A DNA stretch of 64,000 bases from Orbicella franksi (taxonomy: Eukaryota): assembly GCA_964199315.1 (NCBI GenBank), contig OZ116709.1, positions 3,100,001 through 3,164,000 of the forward strand, written 5' to 3'. The notes under the pieces are model-generated. The model saw only the letters and a program-made list of their open reading frames with translations, ran no database searches and was not told where the DNA came from. Of this stretch, positions 62,377 to 64,000 are shown piece by piece. The translations under genes and the position numbers were made by a program. The first letter of the stretch is position 1; each line of letters starts with the position of its first letter.

Positions 62377-63868
62377 TCAGTCCCCGACAAGCATGACACA
62401 TTTTTTAATCCCCACAGTCCCACACATAGGACACAAGTAACACTTAACAGCATTCTGAAAGGCAGGCTTTCTGCATAAAATGCACATCTTCACGTTTGGC
62501 GGTCCAGGCGGCTTATGAAAATGGCACACCATGGCGGACCGTTGATCGTCTTTCCATGTCGTAAAGCGTCCACAAATGAAACATGAATCTTTGTTCAATT
62601 GAAACACGTCTCCAAAAGCCCCCCGCCTTGTACTGCAGAACTGGCAAATGTGAACGTCGTGGGCAAATGCTGTTCCCTGATGAAGTAATTTGTTACAACG
62701 GAGATCCTGAAAAGAAAAAGTAGGAGTTTATTATTAGTAAACGTAAAGACTTCATATCTAGACCTTTCCAAGGCAAGTGACTTCAGTTGTCAAGCTGGTG
62801 TTCGAATCCAGTTTCAATAACCGTGATGAAGTTACTGGTACCCAGTGCCAGAGGTAGATCCCCGAGCATTTTGTCAGGGTTTGAACTCAGAGCTCTCGAA
62901 TAGGAGTCCTGCATACTAACTATAAAGCCATCGCGCCTGTCACAGTTTAGTACAAGGCGTGTAAAAATTGCAATTAATCAAATTAACTATAAAGAAGGCG
63001 AAAATATCCTAGTTTTTAAGGCCGTAAAAACACCTCATGACGAAAAAGGCAAAAAGGGGAAAAATATCTTAAAAGTAATAAGACAATAATTTATCTCCAG
63101 TGTTTTATATTCAAACTACCTTGTAGTAGCTGATTTTCCAAAAGCCAGGTTTGTTTATGGAGCGCTGATCCTTTCTCAGGAATTCCAACAGTCTTTTCTT
63201 TTCTCCAGCTAATTTGAGTTGTTCTGGCACCATGTAGATCACTCGCTCTTCATCTTTGCAGTGATCTGCAAAGAAATCTGCCAGTTTTAAATGAAACTTT
63301 TTCTTTTCCTCAAAATCTACGAGAATGGTTTCCAATACAACCTGCGAGAAAAAAGAAGAGGCGTTCATGAACTGGAGGGGATCTGTAATGTACACTGGTC
63401 AAAGAGCGAAGAGCATTGACTTTTTCAAGGATATATAAAGAAGACGTTTATAACATTTTCATGTAACAAAGTAATAAACATCTTTATATAACACAAAAAA
63501 GATACTTTGTGCACTGCGATTGGTTAAAAAACTTTGTAGCACAACTCAATGAAAACAGACAATCGTTTAATTAAAACATGATGTACGTTTTCCTTTTGTT
63601 CCCAACCATGAAAGTCTGCTATGAACAGTCAGTTAAGAAAAATACAGATTAAACAGTCTGGTTACGTAACCTCTTGTATTGATGCGTGGAAGAAATCGAG
63701 TCTTTCCTGTTCTCTTCTCCCTCCAATGTTTCTAAGAAATGGTTTTAATGTACGTCTTACTTCAGCCCACATCATCATCGGGACAGACTCAGTGAAATCA
63801 TCACTGAGGAGATATTGGAGCTCAGTTTCCCTTAAGCCACCTTTACTACACGCCAGCAGCCCTAAAAC
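62377..63868 (-). CDS. Last three exons of a NACHT/TEP1/NWD/NPHP3-like gene ending in a PHF5-like zinc-knot domain; 5' part lies beyond the window end
   Basis: Exons 63671-63868 (VLGLLACSKGGLRETELQYLL..MWAEVRRTLKPFL..LDFFHASIQE), 63120-63341 and 62377-62706 are all phase 0 with GT-AG boundaries. The first resembles the winged-helix region after the NTPase of TEP1/NWD/NPHP3-type proteins; the NTPase itself is not in the window. Confidence 0.8.
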
Positions 63869-64000
63869 CTACGAGAGAGAGAGAGAGAAAAAAAACTGGA
63901 CATAATTTTATTGGAATCTGTGAGACAAAAATCTCTAAACTCGGCAGTATAGCTTTCCGGAAAGGGACTGTCGTGTTTATGCAGGGACATTGCTAAGCAA

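Follow-up and report, generated by a model that had tools for sequence, protein, structure and literature searches.

The SF3b subunit PHF5A (PF03660, the PHF5A/Rds3 family of the U2 small nuclear ribonucleoprotein) has one Cys, five C-x2-C pairs and one Cys, and its three zinc ions sit at pairs 1 and 4, at pairs 2 and 5, and at pair 3 together with the two single Cys (PMC5458519). Its fold is a left-handed deep trefoil knot, and the protein, which is extremely conserved, is a rigid scaffold touching a HEAT-repeat protein and RNA (PMC5458519). Those who solved its crystal structure reported that the PDB contained nothing else similar, the fold being common only to Rds3 (PMC5458519). Here, we describe a domain with the same ligand formula and a predicted fold of this kind at the C-terminal end of a STAND ATPase family gene in the coral Orbicella franksi. 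The last three exons of the gene lie at 63868–62377 on the minus strand of a stretch of 64,000 nucleotides (GenBank assembly GCA_964199315.1, contig OZ116709.1, positions 3,100,001 to 3,164,000), the whole of which is called the window.

For the remainder of the chain, the closest described proteins are NWD1, NWD2, TEP1 and NPHP3, which share with the present family the N-terminal TIR-like DUF4062 domain, the NACHT subtype (Pfam NPHP3_N) and the NWD1-type winged helix. A preprint on DUF4062 reports a TIR-like NADase fold, with human TEP1 active and NWD1, NWD2 and NPHP3 inactive in vitro, and makes no mention of zinc or PHF5. DUF4062 is also shared with the defence system Swarozyc and with the bacterial DUF4062-NACHT-TPR proteins, in which it is followed by an NPHP3_N-type NTPase and which form the closest group of neighbours in the ESM Atlas. 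The bacterial DUF4062 proteins end in TPR or other domains, and the zinc knot was seen in none of them. Full-text literature searches found no published description of the zinc domain or of the DUF4062-NACHT-knot architecture.

The zinc domain is an undescribed type of C-terminal domain of a STAND NTPase; it is old and widely distributed among animals, corals and frogs included. With a probability of about 0.7, we read the gene as a STAND ATPase whose regulatory end is a C-terminal, three-zinc, basic domain of ~105 residues with the predicted knotted fold of PHF5A/Rds3. The PHF5 claim rests on the ligand pattern and the predicted fold and not on demonstrable sequence homology, because the Pfam match is sub-threshold and one sequence match is out of register.

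The zinc domain is encoded by the last exon, exon C (62706–62380, 109 codons). Its formula is C-(CxxC)5-C with CxxH as the third pair, so the 12 ligands are 11 Cys and 1 His. On the minus strand their codons are 62697–62695 (C4), 62646–62644 (C21), 62637–62635 (C24), 62583–62581 (C42), 62574–62572 (C45), 62526–62524 (C61), 62517–62515 (H64), 62484–62482 (C75), 62475–62473 (C78), 62433–62431 (C92), 62424–62422 (C95) and 62400–62398 (C103). The stop codon TGA (62379–62377) follows 6 residues beyond the last ligand, and in the orthologues the chain ends 0–10 residues past the last Cys.

In an alignment of 34 homologous domains from several phyla, truncated fragments aside, 12 of the 12 ligand positions are invariant or nearly so. 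This is far above chance because the other positions average only ~26% identity. Further conserved features are an Arg before C4, NKD before C42, Gly46, HKP after H64 and YLC at C92, and the domain is uniformly basic, with a net charge of +4 to +13 among the family members. A first-pass annotation, made from the letters of the window, had proposed 12 zinc ligands in the number and order of PHF5A and a protein ending in this Cys-rich domain instead of WD40 or TPR repeats. Both proposals stand, the third pair being CxxH and the family being free of repeats.

One relative of 161 residues, with a knot fragment 62% identical, has lost the C95 ligand and diverges in sequence thereafter. A paralogue in decay and a wrongly called fragment are both possible explanations.

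The AlphaFold2 model of the window domain, built on a 17-sequence alignment, has a mean predicted local distance difference test score of 88.8 and a predicted TM-score of 0.79. A Foldseek search of 350,542 PDB chains with this model gave PHF5A/Rds3 chains in all of the top 15 places, although the matches are weak (E 0.17–1.2, TM-score 0.36–0.48). In the Swiss-Prot part of AFDB, the best five entries are all PHF5A. In the ESM Atlas, the first row is a cluster of 87 residues with PF03660 in 67% of its members (TM-score 0.56/0.66), while the other rows reach at most 0.33. Thus, PHF5A/Rds3 is the best and essentially the sole structural match in the three collections.

In the AFDB cluster library, the best match is the sea-urchin orthologue's own model (TM-score 0.93, root-mean-square deviation 1.5 Å), followed by three more family members and then by PHF5 proteins. 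The predicted structures A0A0B7A7Z1 (300 residues), A0A813QUV7 (347 residues) and A0A815HDT4 (897 residues) have the same C-terminal knot with TM-scores of 0.73–0.80, and these three may extend the family to more phyla.

The predicted model resembles PHF5A/Rds3 in three dimensions over the whole domain, and the structural alignment spans the PHF5A residues 7–91, which is the whole knot. Since this alignment is colinear, the ligands can be paired after PHF5A, and the predicted sites are Zn1 with C21/C24 and C75/C78, Zn2 with C42/C45 and C92/C95, and Zn3 with C4, C61/H64 and C103. The identity to PHF5A in the structural alignments is 15–23%, or ~12–18 residues, about what the superposed ligands alone give. 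The fold is predicted to be PHF5A/Rds3-like and not that of RING, LIM or C1. A C1 domain (PF00130; H-x12-C-x2-C-x13-C-x2-C-x4-H-x2-C-x7-C, two zinc) was considered separately and rejected for the missing H-x2-C element and on structure.

The likeness to PHF5A/Rds3 consists of the 12-ligand, three-zinc formula and a similar size of ~85–105 residues, whereas the differences are several. The present domain has CxxH as its third pair and its own conserved motifs NKDxCxxCG, HKP and YLC. Its spacers of 16/17/15/10/13/7 compare with 11/3/12/8/10/9 in PHF5A, most loops being longer, and the residues by which PHF5A contacts SF3b are not recognisable. It is far less conserved, and PF03660 describes a free-standing SF3b protein of ~110 residues, whereas the present domain is always the C-terminus of an ATPase of 800–1,080 residues.

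The three exons are the end of an intact, expressed coral gene. Exon A (63868–63671, 66 codons), with AG at 63870–63869 before it and GT at 63670–63669 after it, codes for the last part of the STAND module's winged-helix region. Its translation contains LLACSKGGL..ETEL and RRTLKPFLRN..FFH and aligns with the conserved winged-helix block of 13 full-length proteins, and transcript contigs cover it at 63668–63865. Exon B (63341–63120, 74 codons) encodes the short helical region between the winged helix and the zinc domain, ends in a FLRKD..YYK linker, is colinear with the orthologues and is present in the RNA contigs. The introns A/B (63670–63342, 329 nucleotides) and B/C (63119–62707, 413 nucleotides) are both GT..AG and in phase 0.

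We placed contigs of four RNA runs from three studies, with two poly-A libraries among them, on 62000–64000. Each run has a contig that connects 62705/6 with 63119/20 and 63338–41 with 63668–71, with at least 220 nucleotides on each side of the B/C joint. The skipped parts are CT..AC on the plus strand and hence GT..AG on the gene strand. Therefore, the three-exon splice model is correct and the gene is transcribed, and the phase-0 splicing called in the first pass, including the 63120/62706 junction, is borne out. The gene stretch of the window is present in 20 RNA or unclassified runs.

Spliced contigs run unbroken from 62705 to 62000 and beyond, giving a 3′ untranslated region of at least 377 nucleotides (62376–62000). 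As the reading frame has no start within the window and an AG stands before exon A, the gene extends beyond position 64000. In two runs, low-depth contigs (~7 versus 34–64 for the spliced ones) cover 63314–63697 and are unspliced through the 329-nucleotide intron, for which pre-mRNA, intron retention or DNA carry-over are possible sources.

Aligned to 13 full-length proteins, the 249 spliced residues match their last ~250 residues with no gap at either junction (E 1e-37 to 1e-75), and they also align end to end with the C-termini of full-length proteins from three other corals and ~20 other animals. The window product is 76% identical over its full length to the C-terminus of an 852-residue coral open reading frame on a 3.4-kb contig and 68% identical to an 807-residue Pocillopora verrucosa protein, while exons A and B are 84% identical to a Desmophyllum pertusum protein. 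Exons A and B have no Pfam match by themselves. They align to the winged-helix and helical region of all orthologues, one of which gives weak Pfam matches to HTH_NWD1 and NPHP3_hel.

The D. pertusum gene model (865 residues) runs past the exon-B donor into the intron and has no zinc domain, and the public reading-frame calls of 141–188 residues for the knot region, one of them a 95%-identical fragment, begin inside the upstream intron. Such mangled or missing knot exons in public gene models may explain how the domain went unnoticed.

In Pfam, the full-length orthologues contain DUF4062, above threshold, and NACHT/NPHP3_N. Their order is the TIR-like DUF4062, NACHT with Walker A and B, the winged helix, the short helical region and the knot. 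In a related coral, a 1-Mb contig has, in this order on one strand over ~17 kb, the exons for DUF4062, one for the P-loop (GPAGSGKS), and those for the winged helix, the helical region and the knot. Hence, judged by its sequence relatives, the gene belongs to an old animal STAND ATPase family with a NACHT of the NWD1/NPHP3/TEP1 type. The first-pass call of a STAND/NACHT gene is upheld by orthologues that have DUF4062, Walker A and B and the winged helix, three scleractinians (68–84% identity) among them. A STAND NTPase upstream thus holds for the family and the close coral relatives, while the O. franksi gene is read only to 64000 and its NTPase exons would lie beyond that position.

The family differs from NWD1, NWD2, TEP1 and NPHP3 in having no WD40 or TPR repeats, in the zinc knot that ends the chain, in its small size of only ~800–1,080 residues and in its Walker B. 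No WD40, TPR or LRR repeat domain was found by Pfam in any family member, so that an NLR in the strict sense, with a repeat sensor, is not what these proteins are. Walker A is GxxGxGKS with GxGKS invariant, and Walker B is hhhhDAVNQ, or D-D-L-T-Q in the sea urchins. Many NACHT proteins have D-G-x-D-E at the Walker B position. If this is the typical form, amides replace acidic residues in the present family, which might bind ATP but hydrolyse it poorly.

Among the named members, the cnidarian ones belong to sea anemones (Actinostola, Actinia, Nematostella), stony corals (Pocillopora, Desmophyllum), Hydra and scyphozoans (Rhopilema, Sanderia). The others are from starfish, sea urchins, crinoids, two hemichordates, amphioxus, one nemertean and four frogs (Hyperolius, Rana, Ascaphus, Rhinophrynus). 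They are labelled ‘telomerase protein component 1-like’ or ‘TPR repeat-containing protein DDB_G0287407-like’ at their sources, and both labels are misleading.

The mean pairwise identity across the phyla is 0.34 for the knot, 0.33 for NACHT and 0.51, the highest, for the winged helix. Between the window and the related coral, the proportion of synonymous differences (pS) is saturated at 0.69–0.76, while that of nonsynonymous differences (pN) is 0.12–0.15 in all three exons, with a pN/pS of 0.18 for exon B. Such a disparity marks the gene as an old one kept by purifying selection; neither a rapidly changing receptor nor a domain captured recently would look like this.

What follows the winged helix in a STAND protein is as a rule the part that regulates the switch, and here the zinc domain occupies the place that WD40 or TPR repeats have in the relatives. 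The full layout would be a Met-Gly start as a probable myristoyl anchor, DUF4062, NACHT, the winged helix, the short helical region and the basic zinc domain of ~105 residues. Our working model comes by analogy from APAF-1 with its C-terminal sensor, although APAF-1 has an NB-ARC NTPase, a CARD effector and a WD40 sensor. In the APAF-1 comparison of the DUF4062 preprint, the ATPase has the C-terminal domain folded back onto it, and oligomerisation becomes possible once a ligand is bound.

By this analogy, the C-terminal zinc knot would be the regulatory end that keeps the ATPase closed, as in other STAND proteins. Its binding to a conserved partner would permit the NACHT oligomerisation, and the oligomer would gather the N-terminal TIR-like domains at the membrane. 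For the partner, we tentatively suggest a polyanion such as RNA, given the uniformly basic character of the domain and the contacts that PHF5A makes with RNA and with a helical-repeat protein. A bolder version would make the domain an ancient offshoot of spliceosomal PHF5 that was captured before the cnidarian–bilaterian split as the ligand end of a membrane-anchored NACHT, with RNA or another polyanion gating a TIR-like, NAD-cleaving effector. We regard this as quite improbable; if true, an animal STAND sensor arose from a splicing-factor module and a second natural family of zinc-knotted proteins exists.

The knot could instead be a constitutive docking or localisation module, binding protein or lipid, in a protein with a conserved housekeeping role that would liken it to the myristoylated, cilium-targeted NPHP3 and not to an immune receptor. 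Its slow evolution and wide phyletic spread would fit such a role. So would the Met-Gly start with a small residue at position 6 in 18 of the 26 full-length sequences, which we take to be a probable N-myristoylation signal, and the basic character, as in the lipid-binding zinc domains FYVE and C1. PHF5A is itself a scaffold. However, the C-terminal module of the characterised STAND proteins, APAF-1 included, is normally regulatory. We hold the docking role to be less likely than the regulatory end, but a serious alternative and the strongest of the competitors.

Several sequence results weigh against the PHF5-like fold and would favour an ordinary multi-zinc finger, such as a C1-like domain, a RING-like cross-brace or a tandem zinc ribbon, with the PHF5 likeness as an artefact of a fold memorised by AlphaFold2. 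The window domain scores 13.4 bits (E 0.09) against PF03660, below the gathering threshold of 26.7, and has a similar noise-level match to a prokaryotic RING family. No Pfam model covers the exon C domain. Among the 34 domains, PF03660 is matched by 4 (best E 3.8e-4) and C1_1 by 6 (best E 0.027), with noise matches to many other zinc-finger families, Prok-RING in several. Family profiles searched against the PDB sequences retrieved not PHF5A but the C1 domains of PKC (E 0.03–0.08).

Moreover, the PHF5 sequence matches are weak, and the one of a member with yeast Rds3 (E 0.05) lies two Cys pairs away from the register of the structural alignment, for which reason it is not counted as evidence of homology. 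All of the models come from one method family. Hence, PHF5 family membership is not established by sequence alone, and the PHF5-like domain called in the first pass is sustained by the predicted fold and the structure searches while Pfam leaves it below threshold. Against these points, PHF5A/Rds3 leads the structure searches of the PDB, the Swiss-Prot part of AFDB and the ESM Atlas, and the 12 ligands follow its formula. An ordinary multi-zinc finger appears very improbable to us.

As an integrated decoy of host PHF5A, the knot would bait effectors or toxins aimed at SF3b and so trigger the NACHT switch in cnidarian immunity. This fits its sensor position, its predicted fold and the fact that bacterial natural products are known to target SF3b, yet it is the least probable reading. 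A decoy must keep the surface of its target, and PHF5A, for all its extreme conservation, shares essentially only the zinc ligands with the knot, a poor basis for mimicry. The family is old, with orthologues in at least six phyla or subphyla, frogs among them; the knot changes no more quickly than NACHT does, and the window contains no paralogue. The decoys of plant NLRs closely resemble the targeted host protein and are usually lineage-specific; the divergence from PHF5A and the phyletic spread place the knot outside this class. The first-pass annotation had suggested a new architecture, possibly an integrated decoy or a nucleic-acid sensor in cnidarian immunity. The family evolves slowly under purifying selection and has members in Cnidaria, Echinodermata, Hemichordata and Cephalochordata as well as in frogs and a nemertean. 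A cnidarian novelty or a recently integrated decoy is therefore unlikely, and the knot is more likely to be a conserved module at the C-terminus that regulates or binds a ligand.

For zinc-finger and knotted proteins, PHF5A/Rds3 has so far been treated as a fold of one family, and a second family with the same formula and a predicted fold of this kind would be of interest to that field. For STAND and NLR biology, a compact zinc domain joins the short list of C-terminal modules such as LRR, WD40, TPR and ankyrin. The family also couples conservation from corals to frogs with a TIR-like domain, and relatives of that domain have recently been reported to be NADases. As it is small, conserved and present in tractable animals (Nematostella, Hydra, sea urchin, frogs), its function is directly testable.

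Run exhaustively over 1.84 billion representative proteins, a phmmer search gave 17 relatives, and further searches brought the family to 34 domains. A word-based search with the hemichordate knot alone retrieved only itself, and a feature search of the ESM Atlas, likewise limited to the knot, gave sub-threshold matches only. Recovery of the homologues succeeded with the wider region and then with a 570-residue profile.

In the related coral, a LINE-like element with endonuclease and reverse-transcriptase reading frames occupies 4229–6347 of its locus, in the intron between the counterparts of exons A and B. Another piece of that locus has a reverse-transcriptase/RNase H fragment at 7974–8462, which is oriented against the gene and lies within one of the orthologue's upstream introns.

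Elsewhere in the 64-kb window, no second copy of any of the three exons was found. A scan for bacterial-type promoters and terminators downstream of the gene found nothing, this type of scan being irrelevant for a eukaryote. The short open reading frames at 59.7–61.9 kb have no Pfam match. At 59774–60870 they form a cluster of short overlapping frames on both strands, which may be a decayed repeat or a transposon remnant downstream of the gene.
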